From sequence record NC_015251.1: DNA of 64,000 nt; one strand, written 5' to 3'. Numbering within the stretch: position 1 is the first letter of the stretch; the number at the start of each line of letters is the position of its first letter. The position numbers were made by a program, and so were the translations under genes. Below are positions 11,614-53,331 of the stretch, piece after piece. The notes beneath the pieces were generated by a model. It saw nothing but the letters and a program-made list of their open reading frames with translations. It did no database searches and was not told the DNA's origin.

Positions 11614-11663
11614 AGGGATCCCCTTTATTGTTATTTAGGGGGATTTAATCCCCCAATCATTTT

Positions 11664-12465
11664 TTAATCAAAACCCCAATCTTTTTGTTTATCTTCACAT
11701 GGATCTTGTGGTTTATATTCAACCCATGGTGTAAATGGTGCAGTTGCTATAGGTAATCCAGTACCAATTATGGTATCAAAATCATCTATAAAATCTTCGG
11801 CTTCATCCGCAATGAAATCGTCTTCTTCATATTCGATTATTGATGTATCAACCCGCTTATCTAGATTTCTAATTGGATCCAATCCAGAATCCATAACAAA
11901 ATCAGAAGGATTAAATTCAGGTTTTGAGTTCTTCACCAGAATAAATAAATTTCTGAGCAGTTATTTTGTATTGTGTTTCCTGACCCATTTGGAAAAATGG
12001 GTTATTAGGTTCAACCCAAGTAACCTCAAAAATGGCATTATTCATAGGGAAATATATAAGATCGCCCTCCCGAGCTTTATCACCATCCGCCTGTCTATTA
12101 AACAACTCTGGGGAAATAGTGAATTGAGCTTCGTCATTAACACTCATACCGAATTTAGAAAAGAATTCCTGACGACCCTCATAACCTTCAAAGCTGTCAA
12201 GATACATTGCGACTCGATATGCCTTGTTGAATTTGGATTGCATATCCTCACCAAATAAAAGGTCTAGCTTTACAAACTCTCTCCGCATATAATAAACTTC
12301 AATACCTTTCATCTGTATAGATTCGGATATCAATTGTCTTGCAAATGCTTGAGAATATCCATATTGATAGTTGTTCATGTGGGGATTTAAAATTTCTTTC
12401 TTGTTTGTGTCGTCTTCGTATCCAGTACCGTTTTCAAGACGAGCAAAAAGATTTTCATTGAACAT
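11664..12465 (-). CDS. gp14: neck protein gp14 (split by an extra base in the T4 run at 11922-11925)
   Basis: LISESIQMKGIEVYYMRRE and GDLIYFPMNN; FIYSGEELK continues as PEFNPSDF in the adjacent 90-aa ORF. Confidence 0.9.
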
Positions 12466-12470
12466 AGTAA

Positions 12471-22752: not shown

Positions 22753-23680
22753 TTATGCCCCCGATTGCATCAATAGATTTAACGTATACATCTATTGCTG
22801 TTTGACTGATATTAGTTACTGTCAAAATAACAGAACTTCCAGTTATACTATAAGTTGCATCAAATAGAAGGTTATCTTCCGGCTTTGATGGAGTTCTTGT
22901 TCGTATACGCGCATATTCAGTTGAATATACATTGGTGTCTGTATTACTGGTATTATTTACCATCAGTAAAGTTTCGCAAGATTCTTGATGTACAGATGCA
23001 CCACGCTGAGTTACAAATAACATATGCTTTACTACGTTATATTGAGCTTTATTGAAAAGAACTACGTTACGTTGAGCACCAGCGGCTATATTAAGAATAT
23101 TGGCAGCGTATGAAGTAGCACTATCACCAAACATAGAATCTAATTTATAATTCCATTTAGAACCGGCTGGACTACCTTCTGTAACCCACAATCTAATTCT
23201 AAAGTTGGTTCTATTGATTACCATTCTGTTACCCAACGATCCGATAGAATCTCCGGTCCCAGTAGTTTTGATAATTACCTCTCTACCGGTTCCAAATCCT
23301 ACGGAACCATCAGTATTGACCAACTCAATACATTCCCCCGCATGACCACTACCAGCAGGAAGGTTTATTGTAATATCACCCGCACCATCTCTTGTAACTG
23401 ATATATCATGCATAGACCCAAAATCTACAGGGTTACCTGATGGCTGTTCTGAACCTGCATAATACGCTCTTGTATGTTTCTGGTAATAACCGGTTCCATG
23501 CAATGTTTGTACTCGGTTTCCAAATCCAGAAGTTTTACCTATTCTATAATCCCCGAACACGTTCCACATACTATTCAGATCTGCGTTTAGTTTTTCACCA
23601 CCATCAAATAGTGTATCACCCGTTCCCTCTTGACCACGTATACCAGTATCGATTAGCTCTTTTGGTTTTTGAATCGACAT
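22753..23680 (-). CDS. gp9: baseplate wedge tail-fibre connector gp9 (appears fused to gp10 in the ORF track)
   Basis: MSIQKPKELIDTG...GTGDTLFDGGEKLN, HGTGYYQKH, STEYARI; removing one G from the G5 run at 22758-22762 restores a TAATAA stop. Confidence 0.88.
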
Positions 23681-32135: not shown

Positions 32136-32139
32136 AAAC

Positions 32140-32168
32140 AAAAGGGATCCCAATCGGGATCCCTTTTT
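32140..32168. terminator. bidirectional terminator
   Basis: AAAAGGGATCCC-aatc-GGGATCCCTTTTT between converging genes. Confidence 0.8.
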
Positions 32169-32170
32169 CA

Positions 32171-34012
32171 TTAGTTAATACTAACAGTTGCACCACTAAG
32201 TTCAGTTGTACCCTGAGAAGGAATAAGGCGATTGAGCAGCCTGTGATTTGTAACTACCTGCCACAGTAACATCATAATCACCCAACACGTTTAAAGACAT
32301 ATCGCCTTCAACATTTTGATTACAATTACCTTGAACAGTAGCAGTCAAATTTACTTTCTACTTCACTACCCACATTCCCCCCAACAGACATAGTAACATC
32401 AACGTCTGTGCGCGATTCTAAGCTACCGTTTATAGTTTGGCTTGGCATTCCCCTTGATTGTCTGGTCAACGTCCCCGTGTATCGTCTCAGACACGTTTCC
32501 TTTGACAACCTGAGTTAGATTACCATCCACTTGTTGTAAACAATTACCCATAACGTATACAGTTGCATTACCTTCAACTACAACTTGATAATCCCCTTTG
32601 ACGTTGACCAATTTATTAGCCATATCAATAGTAAAATCATCACCATATACTTTATTTAATTGACGACCATCACCAGAAACCTCTAAAAAAGTTCCAGATG
32701 GATGTTTCAAATGATAACGTTCCGCACCGGGAGTATCGTCAAATTCTTGAACATGACCGCTCTCCGATTCATATACATGATTATATGGATATTGTGCATT
32801 GTAAGAACTTTTAGGTTCTTCAAATAGCAATCCATCATCTCTAGGGACCGGTGGAACTGACGGATCATCAGGGTCTGTTTCTGCTAATGGTGTTGGGGCA
32901 GGAGCCGCAGAAAATGAACGAAGCATAGTTCTTCCCATTCTCATAGGAATCGGCAACTCTGGTTCTTCTTTAACCATAACCCCATAAGATTCTAAGTTTC
33001 CGGTTAATACGATTCTAGCGACTCTATTTGCTCGACCCGGCGTTTGTTTTGCCCATAACGAGTCCAACATACCAAGTTGAGCTTCTTTCCAACGTTCATT
33101 ATACATATGATCTAGCGTAGTTCTAAACTTTGAAAGACCACCCGCACCCATTTGGAAAGCCATATTTTCAAGAGCCATCTGACGAGAACGGTTTACTTTA
33201 ATATATACCTGTCGGATATTTTCAAATCTCAACATATCAGCTCGGGTTTTATTAATATCACTAGAAAATAAAGTTGATACTTCTTCGGCAGTAATAACTC
33301 CATTTACTTGTCTGCCTAATTGCTGAGATAATATTGAGTTGATTCTACCCATATCTCGGGTTTTTTCAAATATTATTAAATGACCAATACCTACAGTTGG
33401 ATATCCAAGATGATCCCAATATACGTCATTTCTAACGCCTTCATCACCTTTAAGCATTTCCTCAATTGTGAAATCTGGATTATCATCAGGTTTAACATCT
33501 GCAATATCTCGGTCATCAGGGGCAACTGCAACCGTTGTATTTTCGTCTTGGGTATAAACCCCAATAGGTTTTCCACCATACGATGGCGGTGATGAACCGT
33601 TTATACTATTACCCTTCTGACCGCCCCCAGCAAGGATATTAACATCATTACCGATATAACGTGGAAACCTACCAAATGGATCACAAAACCCTCTAAGGGT
33701 GTTTGGTTTTTCAGTATAGGAACCGGGAATACTAAACAATATCAATCCGTCCTGACGAAATGCGTCTCTAAACACCCCCATAACCCACGTACCCTCAACT
33801 AGGTTAGTTGGGCTATGACCTATACCGGAAATAGATGCGGAATCCGTAGAAGTGGCGGCATGGAACCATAACAGTTCTTCGGTGGGTATACCTACCATAT
33901 CACTTTTAGATTTTTGGTCAGTATGTATACCAAATACCCTTACTCTATATCTTCCTTGGTGAAGAGGATCGAATCGATCCTCAACTACCCCATAGAAAAA
34001 ATCACTGATCAT
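32171..34012 (-). CDS. gp5: baseplate hub/tail lysozyme gp5 (C-terminal beta-helix broken by indels)
   Basis: GVVEDRFDPLHQGRYRVRVFG (OB-fold); EMLKGDEGVRNDVYWDHLGYPTVGIGHL (T4-type lysozyme); YPYNHVYESESGH; VxGxxxxx repeats continue to TAA at 32171. Confidence 0.95.
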
Positions 34013-36946: not shown

Positions 36947-37417
36947 ATGGCTGGTCATAAAGCCCATAAGGGGCAGTATTTTGTGAAGAACCCAGAAAAA
37001 TATAAAGGGGACCATAGAAAAGTAACCTATAGGAGTTCTTGGGAAAAATACATTATGGAACTTCTAGATAACCATCCCGATGTTAAATATTGGAACAGTG
37101 AAGAATTGGTAATTCCATATTTTTCAAATGCAGATGGAAAGAAAAGACGGTACTTTATGGACATGTATATACAATGGATTGATGGTAGCGTATCGCTTTG
37201 GGAGGTAAAGCCCACACACGAATGTTATCCCCCAGTACCACCAAAAAGAAATACATTGAAAGCTAAAAATGCATACATACATGCTCAATATACTTGGGCA
37301 GTAAATAATGATAAGTGGAAAACCACAGTCGCATTATGTGAAAAGAAGGGATGGAAATTCAATATAATAACTGAAATCGCTCTAAAGAAAATGGGCTTTA
37401 AAGGATTGAAGAAATGA
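36947..37417 (+). CDS. gp4: head completion nuclease gp4
   Basis: KNPEKYKGD, YRSSWE, WNSEELVIPY, RRYFMD, EVKP. Confidence 0.95.
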   Translation: MAGHKAHKGQYFVKNPEKYKGDHRKVTYRSSWEKYIMELLDNHPDVKYWNSEELVIPYFSNADGKKRRYFMDMYIQWIDGSVSLWEVKPTHECYPPVPPKRNTLKAKNAYIHAQYTWAVNNDKWKTTVALCEKKGWKFNIITEIALKKMGFKGLKK

Positions 37418-38073
37418 ACTATCATAAAATATACGATGACCTAATAAATAGGTCATTTAATAGAATCATTCCAAAAGAACAATATAAAGAGAAACATCAT
37501 ATTGTACCAAAATGTATGGGAGGTTCTGACGATAAAAGTAATATAGCAATATTAACACCAGAAGAACATTATCTCGCTCATCAATTGTTAGTTAAGATAT
37601 ACCCAAATGAGGGTAAAATAATTTATGCAGCGAGATGTATGGCAGTTTTATGTAATGACGAACGAAGATCAAATAATAAATTATTTGGTTGGTTGAGAGA
37701 AAAATATTCTAAAGAAACATCAAATAGAATGAAACATCGTAAAATATCTAAAGAAACTTTAGATAAAATGCGTTTGGCTCAACGTAAAAGAGATGTTAAT
37801 GGTGATAAAAATCATTTTTACGGGAAAATACATACACCAGAAGTAAAGGAAAAGATCCGACAATCCAGATTAGGTAAGTCAGGACATATAAACCAAATAA
37901 ATGCAGCAAAAGAATATATGTCTGGTATAGTACATACAGAAAAATGTAGAAAATTGATATCAGAGAAGTTAAAGAGTAACCCAAAGGTTACATGTCCTCA
38001 TTGTGGGAAAGTTGGTGCAAAATCTCCCATGGTTAGACACCATTTTGATAATTGTAAAATGAGGAAATTATAA
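37414..38073 (+). mobile_element. free-standing HNH homing endonuclease (Mob-like, NUMOD3 repeats, C-terminal Zn knuckle)
   Basis: EKHHIVPKCMGGSDDKSN...LTPEEHYLAH; NHFYGKIHT; CPHCGK...HFDNCK. Confidence 0.9.
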
Positions 38074-39068
38074 TGATTTTTGAACTTAATGAAAGAGAAG
38101 AAACCCCCGCAGAGAAACGAAGAAAGCGAGATTGGATCGGTATAGGATCCGATTATATGGCTACTCGAAAGAAATCTGGAATTACTGCTAAAAAGTATGC
38201 AGAAGAAAAAGGATTGAATTACGAAACGTTTAGTCGTGCGATGAGACGACACAGAGAGGATATAAAGAAATATTACTCCCTAACTAATCCTAATAAGACA
38301 AAAGAACAATGGATTGAACTTGGTGTTGATTATCTTACCAAGAAAGAAAAATCTAATATTACTCAGAAAGAGTATATAGAACGAAGTGAACTCAATAAAG
38401 AAACCGCAGAAAGGGCGTTTAGAAGATTCAAGGATGATATTATCATCGCTAAGAGAGTAAAGGATGCCAAATACTCAAATAAGAAACTAACTAGTGGTGA
38501 AAAATATCAAGTTCTGTTACAGGATTTTCGGGGTAAGGTGAGGCAATTTGAGAAAGAACCTCAAAAATCTGAACGGAAATCCATTGAATGGTTTAGTGGG
38601 TTTATAAAGAAAAACGTTAGAGGTCATAAGGTAACTAGACCGGTAGCGGGCAGACTATATACATTCGCATATGATGCAAAACATAAAGCAACCTTGCCAT
38701 ATTGGGATAAATTTCCATTGATTGTATATTTGGGAGAAAGTCGCAAGCATAAAGGTATGCTCATGGGTCTGAACTTGCATTATATACCAGTGAAAGCCCG
38801 TAAAGAATTTATGGAAGAACTTCTTAAATATGCAACAACAGACCGAATTACTAACAGAACGTCCCTAAATATAAATTGGGGAAAGGTTCGAGGAATGAAA
38901 GGTGCAGATCATATGATAAAAGCATATTTGCCTAATCATGTGAGAGGACCGTTTATGGAAGTTAAACCGCAGGATTGGAGTTCTGTTATTAATCTTCCGA
39001 CACAACGGTTTGTTACTGGACCAGAATCTAAGACCTTCAATACTAATAAAGTTTGGAGTTCATACTAA
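38073..39068 (+). CDS. gp2: DNA end protector gp2
   Basis: GRLYTFAYDAKHKATLPYWDKFPLI, GLNLHYIP, IKAYLP. Confidence 0.95.
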   Translation: MIFELNEREETPAEKRRKRDWIGIGSDYMATRKKSGITAKKYAEEKGLNYETFSRAMRRHREDIKKYYSLTNPNKTKEQWIELGVDYLTKKEKSNITQKEYIERSELNKETAERAFRRFKDDIIIAKRVKDAKYSNKKLTSGEKYQVLLQDFRGKVRQFEKEPQKSERKSIEWFSGFIKKNVRGHKVTRPVAGRLYTFAYDAKHKATLPYWDKFPLIVYLGESRKHKGMLMGLNLHYIPVKARKEFMEELLKYATTDRITNRTSLNINWGKVRGMKGADHMIKAYLPNHVRGPFMEVKPQDWSSVINLPTQRFVTGPESKTFNTNKVWSSY

Positions 39069-40015
39069 TGTCACTTATACCACCGATTCCGTCAATTGAT
39101 AGCATGATAAATAGTGTTATCGGTTTTGGCGAAGATACTTTTAATAGTCTACTTGATGATGGGGATTCTAACGAAATCCCCGATTTAACTAGGTTTATGA
39201 GAAAAGTAGAAAATTCAGATCTTGCTAGAGCTAACATGTTTATTGTTAGATTTGGGGATTTTAGTTCCACATTATATAGTGATGGTGTGTTTGACATGGA
39301 TTTACCTATATTTCCAGATACAAACAGTCCGGATGTTAATGGGGGATTATTCTCAGGGAGTTCATATTCTTGGCATAGAATTCAAGATATGGCACTTGGT
39401 GAAGCCCATAAAGTTCTTACCCCTAGCATGAAAAAGATATTTGGTGCTTGGGATCCTTCACTGATACGGATTATACCGGGTGCGGGAGATATACTGGATG
39501 GATTTTTAGGAACCGATTACGATGTGAATAAAGATTTAGCTCTGATGGTTAAAAGTGTTGGGTTGCCTAGTTCTACCCTTGAGACTACAATTAACCGTAT
39601 TGATAAATTACCTAGACACGAAGTAAAGGGTCGGAACTATGGAACTATGACCATGACGTTTTATTGTTCCCCCGGTTATGAGGAACGGTCGTTAATGCTT
39701 ACATGGCAAAATACAATCGTAAACCCGAATAACGGGAGATTTGGTTTTTACCAACAATACGCAAAACCTATAGACGTAATTACTCTTGATCGTCATGGGG
39801 TCAAAAGGTCTACAGTTCACAACACCGGATGTTTTCCTATTGAAGTTGGTGAGGTTCAACTTGATTTTGAGAACAATTCTCAAGTAGCAACATTCACAGT
39901 AACGTTTGCAGTTGCAACAACCGTTCATGTACCTACACAAGGTAAGGAAACTGGTATTGATTCGATTGAATCTATTATAAGAAGAACCACCGGAGTTTTA
40001 AAAGCTATTCGGTAA
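39053..40015 (+). CDS. gp54: baseplate tail-tube initiator gp54
   Basis: DLARANMFIV (gp19 paralogue), LMVKSVGLP, CFPIEVGEVQL. Confidence 0.85.
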   Translation: MEFILMSLIPPIPSIDSMINSVIGFGEDTFNSLLDDGDSNEIPDLTRFMRKVENSDLARANMFIVRFGDFSSTLYSDGVFDMDLPIFPDTNSPDVNGGLFSGSSYSWHRIQDMALGEAHKVLTPSMKKIFGAWDPSLIRIIPGAGDILDGFLGTDYDVNKDLALMVKSVGLPSSTLETTINRIDKLPRHEVKGRNYGTMTMTFYCSPGYEERSLMLTWQNTIVNPNNGRFGFYQQYAKPIDVITLDRHGVKRSTVHNTGCFPIEVGEVQLDFENNSQVATFTVTFAVATTVHVPTQGKETGIDSIESIIRRTTGVLKAIR

Positions 40016-40018
40016 AAA

Positions 40019-40049
40019 TAAAGCCTGTTTCTAACGAAGCAGGCTTTTT
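40019..40049 (+). terminator. terminator after gp54
   Basis: AAAGCCTG...CAGGCTTTTT. Confidence 0.75.
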
Positions 40050-40150
40050 GCTATCTGAATGGGCTTGTAAGCTCACTCAAGACGATTCAACCAACAATCG
40101 TTATGGTTACCCTCTAGAGTTACAAAGGCTCTCATATAAGGTCCTAGAGG

Positions 40151-40353
40151 TTAGTTTCAATTGAAATCAAATTATAAAGTTTCTATTAATATATTATAGG
40201 ACTTTATAATTAGAAATTCTTAAATGAAAATCAATATCATTTGTAAAACCGATATCGGGCTTTGCCCGCGCCAAAGGCGATTCCATCATTCTAACTGTAA
40301 AGTTTCTATTAATATATTATAGAACTTTATAATTTGATTTCAATTGATACTAA
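40151..40353. repeat. nested inverted repeat with twin AT-rich quasi-palindromic cores and a central twin GC hairpin (candidate origin or recombination site)
   Basis: 30-bp outer arms (1 mismatch), 20-bp cores in direct orientation (19/20 identical), 15-bp inner arms (2 mismatches), CGGGC-TTT-GCCCG directly followed by CGCC-AAA-GGCG. Confidence 0.9.
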
Positions 40354-40426
40354 AAAGTCATAGAGTTACTGGGGTATGGTACAATGCCTAGATACATTTA
40401 GACTATTTTAAACAAGAATTTATAAA

Positions 40427-41205
40427 ATGCCACTAAGATTGATAAAAGTGCTCTGCTCGCTGCCATTCAAAAAACAGTACAACAGACTAAATTAACTTTG
40501 TCTGATGGTAGAGAGATTATGATTAGAGCTTTCGTAATGAAAGAAATGAAACTTCTAATGTTAGCAAATGAAGCGGGTGTAGGTATTGAAGAAGCTATTA
40601 TTCAAATAGTTAAAAACTGTGTATTAACTAAAGGTATTGATGTTGAAACACTACCAAGATTCGATCTTGAATCTATATATCTAGCACTATATAAGCTTTC
40701 TAAAGCATCCCCAATAATTCCTGCTATGTTTACATGTGCGAATGAGATTCTGGATGAAGAGGGTAATGTTACCTATGACCAGTATGGAGAAGTCGCGAAG
40801 TGCGGTAATGAGATTAAAGTTAATATCAATTTGAATAGCTCTAGATTAACAGAAGCTCCTGATCGTAGTATAGTTCTTAGTGATGATATAACTATACTAA
40901 TGCGATATCCTAACATTAGCGAAATGGAATATTTTAATGTACAGAAAGAATCTGACTTGTTCAATTTAATCGTTCGCTGTATTGATGAAGTTCATATGGG
41001 GAATAGTATCGTTAGAGCTGGTGTAGACCTTCCATACGAAGATATGGGGGAGATTATGGAATATGTCGATGATAAGGCAATTATTAAACTGAGTAGTTTT
41101 GTTACCGGTATTCTTCTACATATATCAAATATACAAGTACGCTGTAAAAAATGTGGACACGAAGAGATCGTAACTCTTACGGGGGTAGCTAGTTTTTTCG
41201 CTTAA
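40427..41205 (+). CDS. gp26: baseplate hub assembly/tail chaperone gp26 (probable 1-nt deletion just after ATG 40427)
   Basis: IRAFVMKE, two CxxC-like Cys clusters, ILMRYP, C-terminal GVASFF. Confidence 0.85.
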
Positions 41206-45956: not shown

Positions 45957-46041
45957 GCTTGTGTGGTGGAACTGGTATACACATTAGACTTAAAATCTAA
46001 CGCCTTCGGGATTGGGGGTTCGAATCCCCCCACAAGCACCA
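45957..46041 (+). tRNA. tRNA-Leu(UAA)
   Basis: Cloverleaf GCTTGTG/CACAAGC, loop CT-TAA-AA, long variable arm, CCA. Confidence 0.95.
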
Positions 46042-46066
46042 AATTTAAAAACAATAGGAAAATATA

Positions 46067-46285
46067 ATGTCTCAGTTTGTTGTAACTCTAGTGGATCCTT
46101 CTCAATTTAACGACATTGAGCGTATGGTTGTTGATACTTCCTTTATCAAAGGACTCTCCGAACGAAAGGGTCTGGCTTATATTACAGTAGAAACTAAAAC
46201 CTCTAGTTATAAGACAATTGCCGTACATGAATCATTTGATCATATTTCGAATATTATGATTCAAACCAGTCGCGGTTACCTGTAA
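46067..46285 (+). CDS. hypothetical protein
   Basis: RBS AGGA; 72 aa. Confidence 0.75.
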   Translation: MSQFVVTLVDPSQFNDIERMVVDTSFIKGLSERKGLAYITVETKTSSYKTIAVHESFDHISNIMIQTSRGYL

Positions 46286-46349
46286 TTTTTAAACGTGTTT
46301 CATCCCCTATCAAATTTTGGTAGGGGATTTTTATTACCAAGAGGTTAAT

Positions 46350-46493
46350 ATGAAAGTTGTTATGAAATCCGGTCAAAATATTGAAGTTAAAGAAGTTATT
46401 TCTATGGCTAATAACCAATCGCTTTTGGTAACCGATACATATGCGGTATGGGTATATGATAATGAAATCAAAGATGTTTTTGTAGGTGATTAA
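46350..46493 (+). CDS. hypothetical protein (47 aa)
   Basis: RBS GAGG; MKVVMKSGQNIEVKEVISM...; stop adjoins next ATG. Confidence 0.65.
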   Translation: MKVVMKSGQNIEVKEVISMANNQSLLVTDTYAVWVYDNEIKDVFVGD

Positions 46494-46494
46494 T

Positions 46495-47691
46495 ATGGAT
46501 TGGGTTGGTATGCCTGCATTTAAGCAGGAAAAACAAAAAGAATATCACCTAATAACTGCAATAGAAATCGTTGATATGTTTTCTGATAAATCACCACAGA
46601 AAATCCTAATTCGTTTTGATAATGATGTAGATCTTAAATTATTTTCTGATAGATTGGGTGTTCCTTTATCCAAATCAGATAAAGAGATTTATTTTGATGA
46701 CATACATACTTTATCTATCCAGACGGATCAACCATTGACCGATAGAACAAAATCTATCTGGTTTCCTCAACTAGTTAGAGGTATTAATGCTGATAAAAGA
46801 TGGTTTGGTGATGATAAGAAAAATCGATATCCTATCTATATTGTTTCGAAAGGTCGTTATAAAAATGGCTTGACATGGAAAGCCTTGGATAGGGTAGGTG
46901 CCGATTATTATGTAGTATGTGAAAACCATGAATTAGAAAATTATTCTGAAGTTGTAGGTGTTCAACGTTGTTTGGTTCTTCCTCAACATTATCTAGATGA
47001 ATATGATACTTGTGATGATCTAGGTAATACAAGAAGTAAGGGACCGGGAGCGGCACGTAATTTTTGTATAGACCATTCAAAAGAACTTGGGTTTAAACGT
47101 CATTGGGTAATGGATGATAATTTGGATGATTTTCATCGCCTGCATAATAATATGAAGTTGCCGGTTAGGACACCTGCATGTTTTAGAGCAGCCGAGGATT
47201 TTGTTGATAGGTTTGACAACGTTCCCGTTAGTGGGTTAAACTACTATTCATTCTGTAAGTCTACAGATAAGGTAAATCCATACACTAAGAATACCCGAAT
47301 TTATTCTTGTCTTTTGATTGAGAATGATAGTGGTTATCGATGGAGAGGACGATATAACGAAGATACCGATCTAAGTTTGAGAGTTCTAAAGGATGGATTG
47401 TGTACTATTCAATTTAACGCATTCTTGTGTGGAAAAGTTACAACTCAAAGAATGCGGGGCGGAAACAGTAAAGAGTTTTATGACGAAGAGGGTACAATGC
47501 CAAAATCAAAAATGATTGAGGACCTACACCCTGACGTTGCCAAAGTAGTTTGGAAATTTAATAGATGGCATCACCATGTTGACTATACAGCTTATAAGAA
47601 TCTTAAATTGAATCTTATAAATCCGGATCAAAAATATAATGAAGTTGATGATTACGGTATGTATATGATTGATGGTATTAAAACAAAATAG
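46495..47691 (+). CDS. GT-A fold glycosyltransferase, TAGT/GREB1-like (putative DNA base hypermodification)
   Basis: YPIYIVSKGR, GPGAARNF, WVMDDN (DxD-like), NTRIYSCLLI, RWRGRYNEDTDLSLRVLKDG, QRMRGGN; fused N-terminal WVGMPAFKQE...TKSIWFP domain. Confidence 0.75.
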   Translation: MDWVGMPAFKQEKQKEYHLITAIEIVDMFSDKSPQKILIRFDNDVDLKLFSDRLGVPLSKSDKEIYFDDIHTLSIQTDQPLTDRTKSIWFPQLVRGINADKRWFGDDKKNRYPIYIVSKGRYKNGLTWKALDRVGADYYVVCENHELENYSEVVGVQRCLVLPQHYLDEYDTCDDLGNTRSKGPGAARNFCIDHSKELGFKRHWVMDDNLDDFHRLHNNMKLPVRTPACFRAAEDFVDRFDNVPVSGLNYYSFCKSTDKVNPYTKNTRIYSCLLIENDSGYRWRGRYNEDTDLSLRVLKDGLCTIQFNAFLCGKVTTQRMRGGNSKEFYDEEGTMPKSKMIEDLHPDVAKVVWKFNRWHHHVDYTAYKNLKLNLINPDQKYNEVDDYGMYMIDGIKTK

Positions 47692-47702
47692 GATACTTAA
47701 AA

Positions 47703-48125
47703 ATGAAAGTTAAGCTAGGTGTATATAATTCTCGAATTTCTGATAAGATGATTAAAAATAGGAATGGAACCATTTTTGTTATTGATCCGAGTGCATTGGA
47801 AAAATACAAACAAACTCTTCCTACAGAGATCAATTACGGTCAACAAATCGATCTTGATGAAATTCGGTCAACCCCAAAACCGGTAGGTCGTATTGATGAA
47901 ATTGAATATGATATCGAAAATGACCTAGTTCATGTTTACGCCAATATCACGAAATATTATAGTGAAATTTGGAATGAACAGCGTGGATTTACTTCATTCT
48001 CTGCTAGGTTGATCGGAAATCTTAGTAAAAAGAATTTTGATAGTGTTTTTGTTACAACTGATGTAATTACATGGGATGTTGAGAATTTCAAAACCGGTTT
48101 GGAGACGGAAGATGGGAAGCTTTAA
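47703..48125 (+). CDS. hypothetical protein, possible degenerate prohead-protease fold
   Basis: NRNGTIF, ALEKY, VHVYANI and SFSARLIG parallel the gp21 motif order. Confidence 0.6.
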   Translation: MKVKLGVYNSRISDKMIKNRNGTIFVIDPSALEKYKQTLPTEINYGQQIDLDEIRSTPKPVGRIDEIEYDIENDLVHVYANITKYYSEIWNEQRGFTSFSARLIGNLSKKNFDSVFVTTDVITWDVENFKTGLETEDGKL

Positions 48126-49137
48126 TACTATTTGTTCGGTAAGTCGCCAGATTGTTGAATGTGGGGATAAGGTAGTATTGTTGGCTATGGCAAATGGCGC
48201 TTGTATTAGCGCCATCCCATTAAACGCCGTATACGATGATTACGGAGACTTCGATGTAGCAAATGACCTTGGCTATGAATGTTTGTTCAAAAACGTTTCT
48301 ATGCACAACGAAGGCGTTACACATGATAATCTGATGTGTTGTTTGGGTTTAAACTCAGATAAACGGTGGACTGTTCCAAATCTATTTTCTACCACAAAAC
48401 GGTCTGAAATTACTTTGTCTGTCATAAAATCTTCGGTATATGATCTAGTTGCAGAATATGGATCCAGAAAATGGAACTACAAGAAAGAGTATAATTTAGA
48501 TCTTAGTTCCCGTTGGGAAAATCGTACTCCCGAATCTACAGCTAAAAATATAAAAAGGTTGGAACTTCAAATTGAAGAATATAAAAAGATGGATGAAGAA
48601 GACTTTTTAATCAATCATATGTATATGATGATTGATAATTTGAAGATGGGTAACGTTCGCCACCACGAACTATATTCACTTAGTCAGTATGGCGATATGA
48701 TCGATCATTATGCACACCATGATGATTCAACCAAAGCTATATTCGATAATATTGATATTTTTTCCAAATTAGAGGATTTCTTTATTGGTATTTCTGCTCT
48801 GGATATTACCCTTGTTCCTCAAGAATATGGTCGCCAGACAGTAAATCAATTCGAACGAGTTAAGATTTTGACTGATATCCAAATTGCTGGATTCAATCAA
48901 ACGGAAAAAATTCAGTTGACACCAATTGAATGGGATGTTAAAGTACCTTCAAATATAGTTGAAGAGTATACCAAACCTAACTGGTCTAATGAAATTGATC
49001 TTATTCGTATTGGAAATTCTCTTGAAATTACGGACTCGAAATATAATGAGTTTAAACAATACAAATACCCAAATGTTTTCTTGAGTGAAGAATTGGTATG
49101 GCCTAACGGTAATTTTGTTGAAAGTGATATGATATGA
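48112..49137 (+). CDS. hypothetical protein
   Basis: Long ORF starting MGSFNTICSVSRQIV. Confidence 0.8.
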   Translation: MGSFNTICSVSRQIVECGDKVVLLAMANGACISAIPLNAVYDDYGDFDVANDLGYECLFKNVSMHNEGVTHDNLMCCLGLNSDKRWTVPNLFSTTKRSEITLSVIKSSVYDLVAEYGSRKWNYKKEYNLDLSSRWENRTPESTAKNIKRLELQIEEYKKMDEEDFLINHMYMMIDNLKMGNVRHHELYSLSQYGDMIDHYAHHDDSTKAIFDNIDIFSKLEDFFIGISALDITLVPQEYGRQTVNQFERVKILTDIQIAGFNQTEKIQLTPIEWDVKVPSNIVEEYTKPNWSNEIDLIRIGNSLEITDSKYNEFKQYKYPNVFLSEELVWPNGNFVESDMI

Positions 49138-49511
49138 CACATGACTCATTTGTATATACTGTTTATAGTCCATGTTTTTGTATTGATGCAAAAACAAATA
49201 TACCGGTTTGGGGTTATCCTAAAGAAGGGGAACCGCCAATTAACATAATTCATCTAGAGAATCAAAGAGTTTATTTTGATGAGTCGATCCGTATTGATCT
49301 GCACGGTCTTGTAACTGCGGTACTTATGTTTATTAGAGAACGAACCCCAGAAGCAACACATCTTTATATGTACAATATAAATGTGGAACATCAATATGTT
49401 GAATATACTTTCATCAATAAAGAAAAGAAGTTGCGCCTAGCAAGGAGTAATATTCATAATAAAAATACACCTTTTGTTGAAAGTGAATGGTTGACCCCTA
49501 ATGAAAATTAA
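49134..49511 (+). CDS. hypothetical protein
   Basis: ATGA overlap with the previous ORF. Confidence 0.75.
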   Translation: MTHDSFVYTVYSPCFCIDAKTNIPVWGYPKEGEPPINIIHLENQRVYFDESIRIDLHGLVTAVLMFIRERTPEATHLYMYNINVEHQYVEYTFINKEKKLRLARSNIHNKNTPFVESEWLTPNEN

Positions 49512-49544
49512 AAGTTTACAAACCACATTTTGATATGTTATCAT
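49510..49544 (+). promoter_or_regulatory. early-type promoter driving CCA-ended ncRNA
   Basis: AAAAGTTTACA-N15-TGtTATCAT. Confidence 0.75.
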
Positions 49545-49551
49545 TGTTTTA

Positions 49552-49690
49552 GATACGAAAAGGTCGAGCGCGATGCGGTAAGGAAGCAAAGCGGTTACAT
49601 CCTTAATACTGAACCGATTAAGTTACGGCGGATGGACTGGGCTTTGGTAAACGGGGAAGCATAGACCCGAGCACCTGAGTAGTATCACCA
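49552..49690 (+). ncRNA. 139-nt CCA-ended structured RNA (T4 species-1/RNA C-like candidate)
   Basis: 5' GATAC pairs with 3' GTATC followed by ACCA; starts about 7 nt after the -10 box; GC-richer than its surroundings; no ORF. Confidence 0.65.
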
Positions 49691-49708
49691 AATTATGGGA
49701 GTTTATTT

Positions 49709-50104
49709 ATGACACGTAATGAGAAATATAAATTAGGAGTTTCTAAATTTATCAAGAAAGGTTTAACATTGATACAATCTAGTATCATGTATAAACAGAC
49801 AGATCCTGAATGGGAAGAAAAAGACGAAATTTATTGCTACCTAAATAAGGATGATAAAGAGATTTACATTATTAAACGTCTTGGGTCGTGTTGTGGTCCT
49901 TGGCTTAGTGTAAGTTGTCGAATTCTTCGTAGAAAAGGTTATGCGGAATTCAATTTTGATGATACAATAGAAGCTGATTATATGGGTGGTAAACGAACTG
50001 CATATCGTGTGATGTTTACATCCGAACCGGAAGTAGTGTATAATGAAAACTTCCCGTTCTACAAATCGAATCTAATTCAGATTTATGAAAAACTAACCAA
50101 ATAA
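49709..50104 (+). CDS. hypothetical protein
   Basis: RBS GGGAG; 131 aa. Confidence 0.75.
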   Translation: MTRNEKYKLGVSKFIKKGLTLIQSSIMYKQTDPEWEEKDEIYCYLNKDDKEIYIIKRLGSCCGPWLSVSCRILRRKGYAEFNFDDTIEADYMGGKRTAYRVMFTSEPEVVYNENFPFYKSNLIQIYEKLTK

Positions 50105-50138
50105 AAAGTTTACACATCATTGAATATTGTGATATGAT
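50104..50138 (+). promoter_or_regulatory. early-type promoter for tRNA array
   Basis: AAAAAGTTTACA-N15-TGaTATGAT. Confidence 0.75.
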
Positions 50139-50202
50139 GGTTATATCGATGAGTCATCGAACAAACAGTTTTGTGATGTACATCTAGAATGTTTAAACTT
50201 GT

Positions 50203-50279
50203 GCGCTGTTAGCTCAGTTGGATAGAGCAACGTTCTTCTAAAGCGTGGGTCGCTGGTTCGAATCCAGCACGGCGCACCA
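50203..50279 (+). tRNA. tRNA-Arg(UCU)
   Basis: GCGCTGT/ACGGCGC, loop CT-TCT-AA, CCA. Confidence 0.95.
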
Positions 50280-50285
50280 AAATTC

Positions 50286-50369
50286 GGGGATGTGGTGAAA
50301 TTGGCAGACACACCAGATTTAGGTTCTGGCGCTTATAGCGTGACGGTTCGAGTCCGTCCATCCCCACCA
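50286..50369 (+). tRNA. tRNA-Leu(UAG)
   Basis: GGGGATG/CATCCCC, loop TT-TAG-GT, CCA. Confidence 0.95.
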
Positions 50370-50385
50370 GATTTAAGGGATAACT

Positions 50386-50454
50386 ATGAAAATCCTCAAA
50401 ATGAAGAAATACCCTTACACATGTAGATTGTGTGGTTGGGATTATGAAAATTGA
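50386..50454 (+). CDS. Cys-containing micro-ORF A (22 aa)
   Basis: MKILKMKKYPYTCRLCGWDYEN*; RBS AAGGGA; paralogue at 51913. Confidence 0.6.
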   Translation: MKILKMKKYPYTCRLCGWDYEN

Positions 50455-50477
50455 AGTTTGTGAATAAAAAGCTTTAT

Positions 50478-50553
50478 GCGGGTGTAGCTCAGTTGGTAGA
50501 GCTTCTGATTTCCAATCAGAATGTCGCGTGTTCGAGTCACGTTACCCGCTCCA
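50478..50553 (+). tRNA. tRNA-Gly(UCC)
   Basis: GCGGGTG/TACCCGC, loop TT-TCC-AA, CCA. Confidence 0.95.
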
Positions 50554-50555
50554 AA

Positions 50556-50630
50556 TTTGTATGTAACTCAATTGGTTAGAGCACGGGACACAAATCCCGT
50601 AGGATGTTGGTTCGAGTCCAATCATACAAA
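50556..50630 (+). pseudogene. tRNA-like element with 6-nt anticodon loop and no encoded CCA
   Basis: TTTGTATG/CATACAAA stem, normal D and T arms, CGGGA-CACAAA-TCCCG. Confidence 0.7.
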
Positions 50631-50641
50631 AATTTCAAGAT

Positions 50642-50719
50642 GGCCCCCATAGCTCAGTTGGTTAGAGCGTCCGACTCATAATCGGGTGGTCACTGGTTCG
50701 AGTCCAGTTGGGGCCACCA
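50642..50719 (+). tRNA. tRNA-Ile2(CAU, lysidine type)
   Basis: GGCCCC(C)A/TGGGGCC acceptor and CT-CAT-AA loop like enterobacterial ileX; one extra C is probably an error. Confidence 0.85.
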
Positions 50720-50740
50720 AATTTTGATGAGAACTATATT

Positions 50741-50935
50741 ATGTCTGGTATAAAATCCATAATTGAAAATTGGTCAGTTGGTGATGGTATAATCCACTGG
50801 AAGAATGGACGTCATAGTTTAGTAGTCTTTGGGTTTGCTCCAAATGGAGAACCTGCATTTAAGTTTAAAGGTAAGAATAAACTTACGTCAGTAAGACAGA
50901 TTGAAAAATCAATAGTGATGGCACATATTCTATAG
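50741..50935 (+). CDS. hypothetical protein
   Basis: MSGIKSIIENWSVGDG...; 64 aa. Confidence 0.65.
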   Translation: MSGIKSIIENWSVGDGIIHWKNGRHSLVVFGFAPNGEPAFKFKGKNKLTSVRQIEKSIVMAHIL

Positions 50936-51177
50936 TCGTAAGCTCTCACGAATTTAATGGTCGTTGACCTTACGATAACAATAAAGCGGGTATGAGTCCC
51001 CTAGCTTTTAAAATTATAAAAGGGATGTTGATGCGCGTATGTAGCCGGGTTATAATGACCGAGATTCATGAAGGGTAAAAGACTACCCTAAATATTAGTG
51101 TAAGAAGAGTATTTTGGGGTTATCGCAATTAAATTGTTATAATTTTTCGGAATACCAGTTACACTAATAAATATTAT

Positions 51178-51253
51178 TGCGAGTTGGAGAAGTGGTCATC
51201 TCGACAGGCTCATTACCTGTAGGTCGGTTGTTCGAATCAACCACTCGCAACCA
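51178..51253 (+). tRNA. tRNA-Met(CAU), fMet-like
   Basis: TGCGAGT/ACTCGCA-A-CCA, loop CT-CAT-TA. Confidence 0.9.
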
Positions 51254-51259
51254 AATTAA

Positions 51260-51335
51260 GGGCGTGTAGTTCCAGCGGTAGAACGATGGACTGTTAATCC
51301 ATGTGTCGGGGGTTCGAATCCCTCCACGCCCGCCA
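51260..51335 (+). tRNA. tRNA-Asn(GUU)
   Basis: GGGCGTG/CACGCCC, loop CT-GTT-AA, CCA. Confidence 0.95.
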
Positions 51336-51337
51336 AT

Positions 51338-51456
51338 TTTGTGTATAGTTTAATCGGTTAGAACATGGTGTGGATCGACTCCACCTTTGCTGAATAGCGA
51401 AATAAATAACTGGCTTTAGTCGCCGGATGGTGCGGGTTCGAATCCCGTTACACAAA
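51338..51456 (+). ncRNA. 119-nt tRNA-like RNA with expanded multi-hairpin anticodon region
   Basis: TTTGTGTA/TACACAAA acceptor, canonical D arm and GCGGG-TTCGAAT-CCCGT T arm; TGGTG/CGCCG stem encloses an insert of about 50 nt. Confidence 0.7.
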
Positions 51457-51464
51457 AAAGTTTA

Positions 51465-51558
51465 GGAAGGTCAACCCGACGGTAGGCGACGGGAGCGGTC
51501 TTGAAAACCGCCGAGGCGTAACAGCGCCTTGTGAGTTCGATCCTCACATCTTCCGCCA
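51465..51558 (+). tRNA. tRNA-Ser(UGA)
   Basis: GGAAGGT/ATCTTCC, loop CT-TGA-AA, long variable arm, GCCA. Confidence 0.92.
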
Positions 51559-51567
51559 AGTTTTAAT

Positions 51568-51643
51568 GCATCGTTAGCTCAGCAGGTAGAGCATGGGACT
51601 TTTAATCTCAGGGTCGCTGGTTCGAATCCAGCACGATGTACCA
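51568..51643 (+). tRNA. tRNA-Lys(UUU)
   Basis: GCATCGT/ACGATGT, loop CT-TTT-AA, CCA. Confidence 0.95.
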
Positions 51644-51649
51644 GTTTTA

Positions 51650-51733
51650 GGATGCATAGGCAAATGGTTAAGCCAGCGGTCTGTAAAACCGTAGCCTTCG
51701 GGCTTCTTGGTTCGAATCCAAGTGTATCCACCA
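51650..51733 (+). tRNA. tRNA-Tyr(GUA)
   Basis: GGATGCA/TGTATCC, loop CT-GTA-AA, CCA. Confidence 0.95.
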
Positions 51734-51739
51734 AATAAT

Positions 51740-51814
51740 AGGTCTATGGTGTAGTGGTAACATGCCGGATTCCAAATCCGTGCGTCTGGGGTTCAAGTCC
51801 TCATGGGCCTGCCA
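51740..51814 (+). tRNA. tRNA-Trp(CCA)
   Basis: AGGTCTA/TGGGCCT, loop TT-CCA-AA, GCCA. Confidence 0.9.
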
Positions 51815-51819
51815 AGTTT

Positions 51820-51896
51820 GGGGGATTAGCTCAGTTGGAATGAGCGACTGGTTTGCAACCAGTAGGTCATCGGTTCGACCCCGATATCCTCCACCA
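51820..51896 (+). tRNA. tRNA-Ala(UGC)
   Basis: GGGGGAT/ATCCTCC with G3:U70, loop TT-TGC-AA, CCA. Confidence 0.95.
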
Positions 51897-51912
51897 ATTT
51901 TAATGAGCTTTT

Positions 51913-52008
51913 ATGAAAATAATCAAGGTAAGAAAGTATCCATATACATGCAACGTTTGTGGTAACGACTATGACGACTGTTATTGTGGATTCTTGTTAA
52001 GTGTGTAA
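51913..52008 (+). CDS. Cys-rich micro-ORF B (31 aa)
   Basis: MKIIKVRKYPYTCNVCGNDYDDCYCGFLLSV*; CxxC...CxC. Confidence 0.6.
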   Translation: MKIIKVRKYPYTCNVCGNDYDDCYCGFLLSV

Positions 52009-52014
52009 ATAGAT

Positions 52015-52313
52015 TATAATTAGGTTATGGGCTCTAGATTCCTAGTCAGTTTCGCACCCTATAATCGCAACGCTGGTTCGAATGTAGATGTTTTGACCGA
52101 CTATAAACTACAGCCAGCAACGTATAAAAATCAGGATAAGTCCTGTAAAATCCTCGGTTGTTTCTAAGTCCCTCTCTGGTTCGTGAGTAATCAGGCGATA
52201 CTAATTATATAAACGGGGTAAATAATTTAAGCGAGATTAGGGTTGCAAACCGAAATCGTAAGTCGTCTTGTACATACCCACTCAAAGAAGGTATGAGTTT
52301 ACAAGGTGCGCCA
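52015..52313 (+). ncRNA. candidate multi-stem ncRNA with interrupted T-arm motif, ending GCCA
   Basis: 9-bp long-range stem 52015-23/52201-09 and several hairpins; no credible ORF. Confidence 0.5.
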
Positions 52314-52339
52314 GTTTTCAGTCTGGTTAAAACTGTTAT

Positions 52340-52417
52340 CCGTGTGTAGGCTAGGCAGGTCAAGTCGTCTGTTTTGGGACCAGAAGATCGAAGGTTCGAA
52401 TCCTTCCACACGGACCA
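52340..52417 (+). tRNA. tRNA-Pro(UGG)
   Basis: CCGTGTG/CACACGG, loop TT-TGG-GA, CCA. Confidence 0.93.
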
Positions 52418-52423
52418 ATTTTT

Positions 52424-52715
52424 ATGAGGAAAAATGATATGTGGCGATCTGTTGAAGTTACTGTTAAAAAGTTTGAAGAATCTCATCTCCGAAAATTGAC
52501 AAAATCGCGTATTAAGGCATTCAAAGCATCCTTGTCTCCGCGAAGTTGGTATGCGATTTACAGATGTTTGTTGTGAATCACGATGCGAAAGTATTGAAAA
52601 AGATCGCCAAACAGAAGCATATGAAATTTATATTCATAATATGGCTAATATCAACGCCATTTATGCCGAGAAATCAACAGACCTTTCCAATGGTTGCACC
52701 AACTGGTCAAATTAG
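52424..52715 (+). CDS. hypothetical protein (apparently frameshifted near 52540)
   Basis: Two abutting protein-like frames (MWRSVEVTVKKFEE... and GMRFTDVCCESRCES...). Confidence 0.35.
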
Positions 52716-52988
52716 CACAAAGAACGGGATAACGGCGTATATCCCCGGAAGAAGCCAGCCATAGAGAATCTGGATATCCTATAAAGTGCTTGTAATTTAT
52801 AGGCGGGATTGGTAGTATAAAGACGATATGGTAACTACCCATTGACTAGCAGTGTGAAACTAGAGGTTACTGTCCTTAACCAAACTACGAACAGATGGAC
52901 AAAATGGTTGATTTCCCTTCCTCTTAGTGATAGCGTATCAACCAAATTAGGATATAATCACAATCTACGGACCCTGATTATATTCCGA
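52716..52988 (+). ncRNA. candidate ornate ncRNA (string of about 7 hairpins)
   Basis: GGGATA/TATCCC, CCTATAAA/TTTATAGG, GGTAGT/ACTACC, TGTCC/GGACA, TGGTTGAT/ATCAACCA, GGATATAATCA/TGATTATATTCC. Confidence 0.5.
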
Positions 52989-52990
52989 CT

Positions 52991-53066
52991 GCCGAATTAG
53001 CTCATCTGGTAGAGCACAGCCTTTGTAACGCTGGGGTGGTCCGTTCGAGTCGGACATTCGGCACCA
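52991..53066 (+). tRNA. tRNA-Thr(UGU)
   Basis: GCCGAAT/ATTCGGC, loop TT-TGT-AA, CCA. Confidence 0.95.
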
Positions 53067-53078
53067 AATTAATTAAAT

Positions 53079-53154
53079 AGTGGATTAGCTCAGTAGGTAG
53101 AGCACTCGACCGATAATCGAGAGCGCATTGGTTCAACCCCAATATCCACTACCA
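53079..53154 (+). tRNA. tRNA-Ile(GAU)
   Basis: AGTGGAT/ATCCACT, loop CC-GAT-AA, CCA. Confidence 0.93.
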
Positions 53155-53160
53155 ATTCTA

Positions 53161-53248
53161 GGAGAAGTGGATGAGCGGCTTAAATCGCTCCCCTGCTAAG
53201 GGAGTAAACCGGAAGGTTTCGAGAGTTCGAATCTCTCCTTCTCCGCCA
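53161..53248 (+). tRNA. tRNA-Ser(GCU)
   Basis: GGAGAAG/CTTCTCC, loop CT-GCT-AA, long variable arm, GCCA. Confidence 0.95.
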
Positions 53249-53255
53249 AATATTT

Positions 53256-53331
53256 GAGGATGTAGTATAGTGGTCAATATCCCTGCCTGTCACGTAGGAG
53301 ATCGCGGGTTCGAGTCCCGTCATCCTCGCCA
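53256..53331 (+). tRNA. tRNA-Asp(GUC)
   Basis: GAGGATG/CATCCTC, loop CT-GTC-AC, GCCA. Confidence 0.95.

Follow-up and report, generated by a model that had tools for sequence, protein, structure and literature searches.

Between genes 54 and 26 of Aeromonas phage 65 lies a nested palindrome (40151-40353), about 200 nt long, whose symmetry raises a simple question: is it one elaborate element built for a single DNA transaction, or is it assembled from parts that occur elsewhere? An earlier note on this DNA had likened its centre to the T-shaped tip of a parvovirus inverted terminal repeat (ITR) and its cores to FRT/lox sites, and had proposed a replication origin, a recombination or resolution site, or a structure involved in packaging. 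The window, i.e., the whole 64,000-nt stretch that was analysed, corresponds to bases 62001-126000 of the phage 65 genome (GU459069.1), and genome positions are obtained by adding 62000 to window positions. Five-digit coordinates below are window positions unless they are called bases of the record, while positions in kb refer to the genome.

The locus and its two facing units

Phage 65 belongs to the T4-like phages (family Straboviridae, subfamily Emmerichvirinae, genus Ishigurovirus), and the nested palindrome lies at about 102.2 kb within its 235,229-bp double-stranded DNA genome. The upstream neighbour on the plus strand is gene 54, encoding the baseplate-tail tube initiator (39068-40015 in the GenBank annotation of GU459069.1), and the downstream neighbour, also on the plus strand, is gene 26, encoding a baseplate hub protein. 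Gene 26 is annotated at 40519-41205 in the phage 65 record and begins about 90 nt earlier, near 40427, in the relatives 65.2 and avDM6; from the annotations of the three genomes and their alignment, it is placed here at 40427-41205. The true non-coding gap between genes 54 and 26 therefore measures about 411 nt (40016-40426). In the alignment, one frameshift near the 5′ end of gene 26 separates phage 65 from 65.2 and avDM6, and it may be a sequencing error or a genuine difference. The earlier note had described the gap as the only large one of the morphogenesis region, a claim that does not fit the record, in which 11614-12470 and 32136-32422 are also unannotated. The former comprises 857 nt without an annotated feature between genes 15 and 13, where locus tags 65p093 and 65p094 are missing and where gene 14 is expected. 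Elsewhere in the window, a putative HNH (Mob-like) homing endonuclease gene (37414-38073) is found between genes 4 and 2, at the same place as in avDM6, and 18 tRNA genes are clustered at 45957-53331, one of them (50556-50631) called with an irregular two-base anticodon.

Directly after gene 54, the gap contains a bidirectional intrinsic terminator (40020-40052), with a 12-bp stem followed by a U-run on either strand and RNA folds of -17.0 kcal/mol (plus strand) and -14.1 kcal/mol (minus strand), z being about -4.3. It is followed by a variable spacer (40053-40142), by the nested palindrome and, towards gene 26, by a candidate late promoter (40386-40394, plus strand). The late motif of phage 65 was recognised within the window as CCCTAAATA-type 7-mers that are enriched 16-17-fold 5′ of long open reading frames; it is thus of the CCCTAAATA type rather than the T4 octamer, which occurs just 24 times in the phage 65 genome and seldom before genes. 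The sequence at 40386-40394 is a one-mismatch variant of this motif, and avDM6 has the exact motif at the aligned place, both of which suggest that it is likely the late promoter of gene 26. A late promoter within the palindrome core was considered and rejected, as the phage's late motif differs from it and sits downstream, at the position just given.

The symmetry itself is well established. The outer inverted repeat extends over 31 nt (40151-40181 with 40323-40353) at 97% complementarity, and the inner arms (40201-40215 with 40289-40303) pair at 13 of 15 positions, in agreement with the earlier description. The two cores that had been reported in direct orientation are both contained in a 48-nt direct repeat (40167-40214 and 40290-40337; 90% identity), and each core is the centre of a quasi-palindrome of its own, with 14-nt arms at 93% around 20 nt in copy 1 and 15-nt arms at 80% in copy 2. 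Chance is excluded, the 30-nt core pattern having two matches in the window against 0.00 expected, and the single-stranded DNA fold of 40143-40360 reaches -44.6 kcal/mol (z = -10.2). The structure is also present in 65.2 (99.3% identity over the surrounding 701 nt) and in avDM6 (84%), so the check proposed earlier, retention of the symmetry in close relatives, came out in its favour. Because three independently sequenced genomes carry the nested palindrome, a fold-back assembly artefact is excluded.

The nest is a convergent, tail-to-tail pair of AT-rich palindromic units of about 66 bp, each beginning with a 16-nt extension, after which two 14-nt arms enclose a core of 20 nt. Copy 1 (40151-40216, plus strand) comprises the extension (40151-40166), the left arm (40167-40180), the core (40181-40200) and the right arm (40201-40216), and copy 2 (40289-40353) lies on the minus strand. 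Copy 2 is a canonical member of its family, aligning with five other canonical copies in phage 65. In copy 1, the extension and the arms are canonical on the plus strand, but the 20-nt core runs the opposite way to the arms that enclose it: when copy 1 is compared with reverse-complemented copy 2, the left part matches at 29 of 30 positions and the right arm at 13 of 16, while the core matches at 5 of 20 positions as it stands and at 19 of 20 once flipped. It is because the copy 1 core is flipped relative to its arms that the two cores appear in direct orientation within inverted flanks. Inversion of a segment between short inverted repeats in hairpin-forming palindromes is a known class of mutation (PMC2903610). 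The flipped core is in the same state in 65, 65.2 and avDM6, and the flip is consequently old and fixed; a flip/flop orientation polymorphism, which the earlier note had proposed to look for, is contradicted by this genome comparison.

Between the two units lie a central spacer (40217-40255), which includes a small AT hairpin (40222-40242), and the twin GC hairpins (40256-40268 and 40269-40279), which have 3-nt loops, TTT and AAA respectively, and fold as the earlier note had claimed. Twenty-three of their 24 nucleotides are identical in avDM6, the single change falling in a loop. A small protein encoded in the centre was also considered: an open reading frame for 32 aa (40224-40322) is open in avDM6, but it has no ribosome-binding site, and its changes, in an alignment judged by eye, are mostly non-synonymous; it was rejected.

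A dispersed family of intergenic units

The units of the window belong to a dispersed family. When the complete phage 65 genome was searched by relaxed BLAST and by pattern, exactly seven units turned up at six loci, all intergenic and centred near 35.4, 59.3, 102.2 (the pair), 136.6, 174.5 and 227.0 kb. The earlier note described the site correctly, yet it is not unique, being one of the six loci of a repeat family. Six copies sharing one exact core are present in CC2 (Ceceduovirus), and syntenic copies occur in ZPAH1, P19, AS-sw and AS-zj, in the vs.1/alc gap, in the gap beside ndd and in the gp54-gp26 gap. Both copies of the window can be aligned with the remaining five of phage 65 and with copies from CC2, ZPAH1, P19 and AS-sw. 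Starting from the gp54-gp26 locus and going round the genome, the strand pattern is -,-,-,+,-,+ in both phage 65 and CC2, and the order of the loci and the distances between them are likewise the same. The gaps between loci, of 24-52 kb, are more even than random placement would give (post hoc test; in phage 65, smallest gap P = 0.009, coefficient of variation P = 0.002); the P values for CC2 are similar, the two genomes not being independent.

Copies within one genome share an identical core and have slightly varying arms, whereas lineages have different core types, a 65-type and a CC2/ZPAH1-type. Eighteen distinct units agree without exception in the TG of the -35 element and the block that follows it, in the core's 5′ half and in the terminal part of the right arm. 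The units contain 15-17% GC and so rank, among all 66-nt windows of the phage 65 genome, in the lowest 0.1%. They are co-oriented with their neighbours at four of the six loci and antisense at two, including gp54-gp26, and at three or four of the six loci the unit faces no real gene. In P19 and CC2, at one locus only, a module leads directly into a ribosome-binding site and a start codon. Downstream of two of the cassettes, at 59.5-60.1 kb and 226.8-227.15 kb, the phage 65 record has unannotated gaps of about 540 and 330 nt, which could hold unannotated small RNAs or small genes.

A search of 185,579 bacterial and archaeal genomes with the gapped unit pattern yielded no true copy, and among metagenomes the same pattern found two phage-65-like contigs, the other 18 hits being due to chance. 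An origin as a mobile element of the host was rejected, given the zero true copies in bacterial and archaeal genomes and the fact that the metagenomic carriers are just these two contigs. An extra degenerate copy at 23157-23205 of the window was likewise attributed to chance, as it sits within the gene 9+10 open reading frame. An unrelated 29-kb viral contig of IMG/VR (UViG_3300028534_000069) contains the exact 20-nt CC2-type core within a different palindrome, which has GC-containing arms and lies directly 5′ of a gene start. No published description of the cassette family was found in the literature on promoter-early stem-loops (PeSLs), in the P19 paper or under the names of the taxa; the earlier statement that no such element had been described for T4-like phages thus agrees with the literature search, and the six-locus family is apparently undescribed so far.

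In ZPAH1, CC2 and P19, the gp54-gp26 gap holds a single minus-strand unit, followed by a module, an imperfect palindrome of about 45 nt that is richer in GC, and then by the bidirectional gene 54 terminator. A second unit facing the first one, like the twin hairpins, is confined to 65, 65.2 and avDM6. Since the gap of the other three phages holds a single unit, the nest is specific to the 65/avDM6 lineage and represents a derived state; its eye-catching symmetry is not that of a designed ITR-like or recombinase site. The twin hairpins of the window are of the same kind as the single GC triloop hairpin found beside the units at other loci, and the T-shaped tip is therefore best understood as a pair of hairpins that belong to two facing cassettes. 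After the right arm, where the other loci have the hairpin module, the window has the twin hairpins without the conserved motifs that flank the hairpin elsewhere. Compensatory change in the module is seen in the central GC stem only, where one pair is GC in four and CG in four of eight sequences. A pseudoknot reading of the neighbouring module was considered and replaced by a simpler nested imperfect hairpin. At the locus beside ndd in AS-sw and CC2, and at 174.4-174.5 kb in phage 65, the short conserved motifs of the module are ordered differently around the central hairpin from those at the other loci, and the module appears to be partly inverted or reshuffled.

The units show strong conservation. 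In a comparison of phage 65 with avDM6, identity is 97% for copy 1, 95% for copy 2 and 94% for the gene 54 terminator, compared with 88% for the start of gene 26, 79% for the centre as a whole (40217-40288), 64% for the right spacer and 43% for the left spacer. Judged by these identities, the units are under stronger constraint than the adjacent coding sequence.

Promoter, origin or binding site

The explanation that we favour, at somewhat less than even confidence and from sequence features, is that the cassette is a promoter-type regulatory element, which in the window would launch a short non-coding transcript from the minus strand, a reading absent from the earlier note. Copy 2 carries sigma-70-like hexamers that match at 11 of 12 positions, with a -35 element at 40343-40338, a 16-nt spacer and a -10 element at 40321-40316, all on the minus strand, and this -10 element forms the centre of the palindrome, pointing leftwards. 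Two other phage 65 copies match at 9 of 12 positions, and no promoter-like site was called in copy 1 on either strand. Transcription from a cassette would start in the core, cross the right arm and enter a GC-rich hairpin. In the window, copy 2 would be the only good promoter; its minus-strand RNA, antisense to the late genes, would cross the twin GC hairpins and copy 1 and would extend no further than the bidirectional gene 54 terminator. The palindromic arms may serve as a binding site for a dimeric factor, or as a hairpin signal, controlling the promoter, and the hairpin-loop flip that presumably inverted the copy 1 core would have removed a plus-strand -10 element. In ZPAH1, CC2 and P19, the arrangement of a single unit, a module and a terminator has the predicted layout of a small transcription unit, the fold of the predicted CC2 transcript having a z of -3.45. 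Four small proteins encoded near gene 52, considered as possible MotA-type activators, gave no MotA domain match.

Several features argue against a promoter. In the CC2-type units, the -10 element ends in G, not T, in all copies, which makes it a poor sigma-70 hexamer, and the -35 element of most phage 65 copies matches at just three of six positions. The abundant ordinary early promoters of the phage differ in form, so the cassette would be a rare, special promoter class, and at three or four of the six loci no real gene lies ahead of it. Directly after the twin hairpins or the units of phage 65 there is no U-run, and no terminator-like site was called there; the combination of a GC stem and a U-run that defines an intrinsic terminator is found at 40020-40052 instead. 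Moreover, the long palindrome, the invariance of the core within a genome and the even spacing of the loci are left unexplained if the cassette is nothing but a promoter.

The main rival explanation, an unlikely one though in line with the origin or primosome-loading structure of the earlier note, is that the six cassettes are early replication origins of the T4 oriF/oriG kind. In such a scheme, the promoter RNA would persist as an R-loop in the AT-rich palindrome, which would act as the unwinding element; the displaced strand would form stable GC hairpins and mini-hairpins that exclude the single-strand-binding protein and offer a loading or priming site, and the paired copy of the window would be a doubled origin. 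T4 provides a precedent, as its minimal origins are about 100 bp long and consist of a promoter and a downstream AT-rich unwinding element, and as it uses at least five origins, mostly in late-gene regions, where most early synthesis starts (PMC3016281). The six loci have their place and orientation fixed in two genera at distances more regular than random, the units are among the most AT-rich 66-nt windows of the genome, and several cassettes face no gene. DNA mini-hairpin motifs, whose stability is far greater in DNA than in RNA, have been reported at phage and plasmid priming sites (PMC13037366), and motifs of this class are enriched beside the units (12 against 1.1 expected in CC2 and 3 against 0.64 in phage 65). 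However, the TTT/AAA loops of the twin hairpins fall outside the mini-hairpin class, and the modules are not unusually stable when nearest-neighbour DNA energies are used (z about -0.5). The spacing tests were post hoc and drew on two genomes that are not independent, and T4 origins have no common sequence motif (PMC3016281). The GC-skew peak that the earlier note had proposed to look for is not there: the site coincides with no extremum at 40.2 kb of the window, the sign change being about 3.3 kb away, at the divergence of genes 48 and 4. As for the promoter-like hexamers and the low GC content, they are compatible with an R-loop origin of the oriF/oriG type but not specific to it. A bolder version, in which the six cassettes would be a sequence-defined, evenly spaced origin family, serving as R-loop priming and helicase-loading sites with a doubled origin in the window, is rather doubtful.

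It is quite unlikely, though in keeping with part of the evidence, that the main role of the palindrome is to bind a dimeric protein encoded by the phage, as an operator, as an architectural or domain-boundary site, or as a recombination hot spot like the PeSLs of T4-type phages; the promoter-like hexamers would then be incidental. The arms are kept symmetric partly by paired changes, the core-proximal segments differing between 65-type and some CC2-type units while remaining complementary; the core, invariant within a genome and different between lineages, behaves as expected from co-evolution with a trans-acting factor; and phage 65 and avDM6 differ by a replacement of the spacer beside the unit, as happens beside PeSLs (PMC4122927). 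A purely symmetric site would need no fixed orientation of the asymmetric extension or of the module, yet the orientation of both is conserved, and no candidate protein was identified. A role at the RNA level appears distinctly improbable. The palindrome, being nearly identical on both strands, would fold strongly in read-through transcripts of either direction, and its AU-rich hairpin of about 20 bp (a fold-back of about 200 nt at this locus) could be a processing or stability signal, such as the target of a double-strand-specific RNase between genes 54 and 26. But the arm sequence itself, beyond its pairing, is conserved across genera, a strong terminator (40020-40052) lies upstream on the plus strand, and no Rfam family matches: Rfam and tRNA (ARAGORN) searches at all loci returned only sub-threshold chance hits and no tRNA. 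Finally, the layout of an arm, an asymmetric core and a second arm, the identity of the cores within a genome and the two small hairpins that tip a long stem all recall FRT/lox-like recombination sites, telomere resolution sites or an ITR-like priming or packaging hairpin, a resemblance that in all probability is formal. The six loci have kept an identical order and orientation between phage 65 and CC2, two genera, nothing pointing to inversions or deletions between the sites, and the flipped core is in one state in 65, 65.2 and avDM6, which contradicts a recombination or resolution site. Across the inspected regions of the record (bases 111001-125800 lie outside them), the annotation contains no integrase, recombinase or protelomerase. 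The likeness to an ITR fails by location as well, the site being internal, at 102 kb of a 235-kb double-stranded DNA genome, and relatives carry a single unit and one hairpin in the gp54-gp26 gap.

Whether the cassettes are promoters, as we tentatively prefer, or origins bears on how T4-like phages are organised, since their origins and regulatory cassettes are thought to have little or no sequence in common. The cassette is a compact element found at six fixed, evenly spaced places in two genera and better conserved than the adjacent coding sequence, and it offers a handle on the organisation of early transcription or on the initiation of replication in 230-kb genomes. Were the cassettes origins, T4-like phages would have their first origin family recognisable by sequence; were they instead promoters of a short structured RNA encoded in six copies, this RNA would be a hitherto unknown player in infection.

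Related systems

Various known elements share part of this layout. T4 oriF and oriG (PMC3016281) resemble the cassettes in their size of about 100 bp, in the succession of a promoter and an AT-rich unwinding region, and in being several, spread round the genome and partly located in late regions; unlike these origins, which have no common sequence, the phage 65 cassettes form one sequence family and are candidate origins only. The archaeal halovirus HF2 has AT-rich repeats of about 30-60 bp, dispersed between its genes, that have proved to be promoters (PMC8707807); their sequence is unrelated, and neither a long palindrome nor a fixed six-locus pattern was noticed in the parts of that report consulted. 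The hairpin-loop inversions of the plastid trnH-psbA spacer (PMC2903610) flip a segment between inverted repeats and leave the arms in place, just as in the copy 1 core, but they are a mutational phenomenon and not a functional element, and in the phages the flip has become fixed, being shared by three genomes. DNA mini-hairpins (PMC13037366), known from priming sites and hairpin promoters, are comparable to the GC stems over G-N-A loops in the modules of the relatives and, in part, of phage 65; the twin hairpins of the window differ by their TTT/AAA loops, and recognition by a primase or polymerase is putative. With FRT/lox sites and the parvovirus ITR, only the formal layout is shared, namely inverted arms, an asymmetric centre and two small hairpins on a long stem, and the phage site differs from them in having no recombinase annotated in the inspected regions and no rearrangement between sites, in being internal and in consisting of a single unit in the relatives.

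Close counterparts are also found in the PeSLs of T4-type phages (PMC2839356, PMC4122927), which are likewise short, conserved, repeated intergenic cassettes combining sigma-70-like hexamers with a stem-loop, and whose neighbouring sequence is also prone to replacement. The stem-loop of a PeSL is a terminator placed upstream of the promoter, and a ribosome-binding site and start codon close the cassette. The phage 65 palindrome, by contrast, is centred on the -10 element, which it straddles, has no U-run and often faces no gene, and no terminator stem-loop precedes the hexamers. Where PeSLs have -35 and -10 elements separated by 16-18 nt, copy 2 matches at 11 of 12 positions and other phage 65 copies at 9 of 12, and the CC2-type -10 element ends in G. 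PeSLs are numerous and clustered in hyperplastic regions, whereas the phage 65 cassettes occupy six fixed loci only, and a gene start follows the cassette at the one P19/CC2 locus alone.

A second class of promoter cassette, abundant in the early regions of phage 65 (125.8-225.7 kb), is present in at least 15 copies between small early genes. It has a good -35 element, a 9-bp inverted repeat that fills the spacer and overlaps an unusual -10 element, and then a conserved T-rich tail. With its stem-loop inside the promoter, this second class looks like phage 65's own version of PeSLs.
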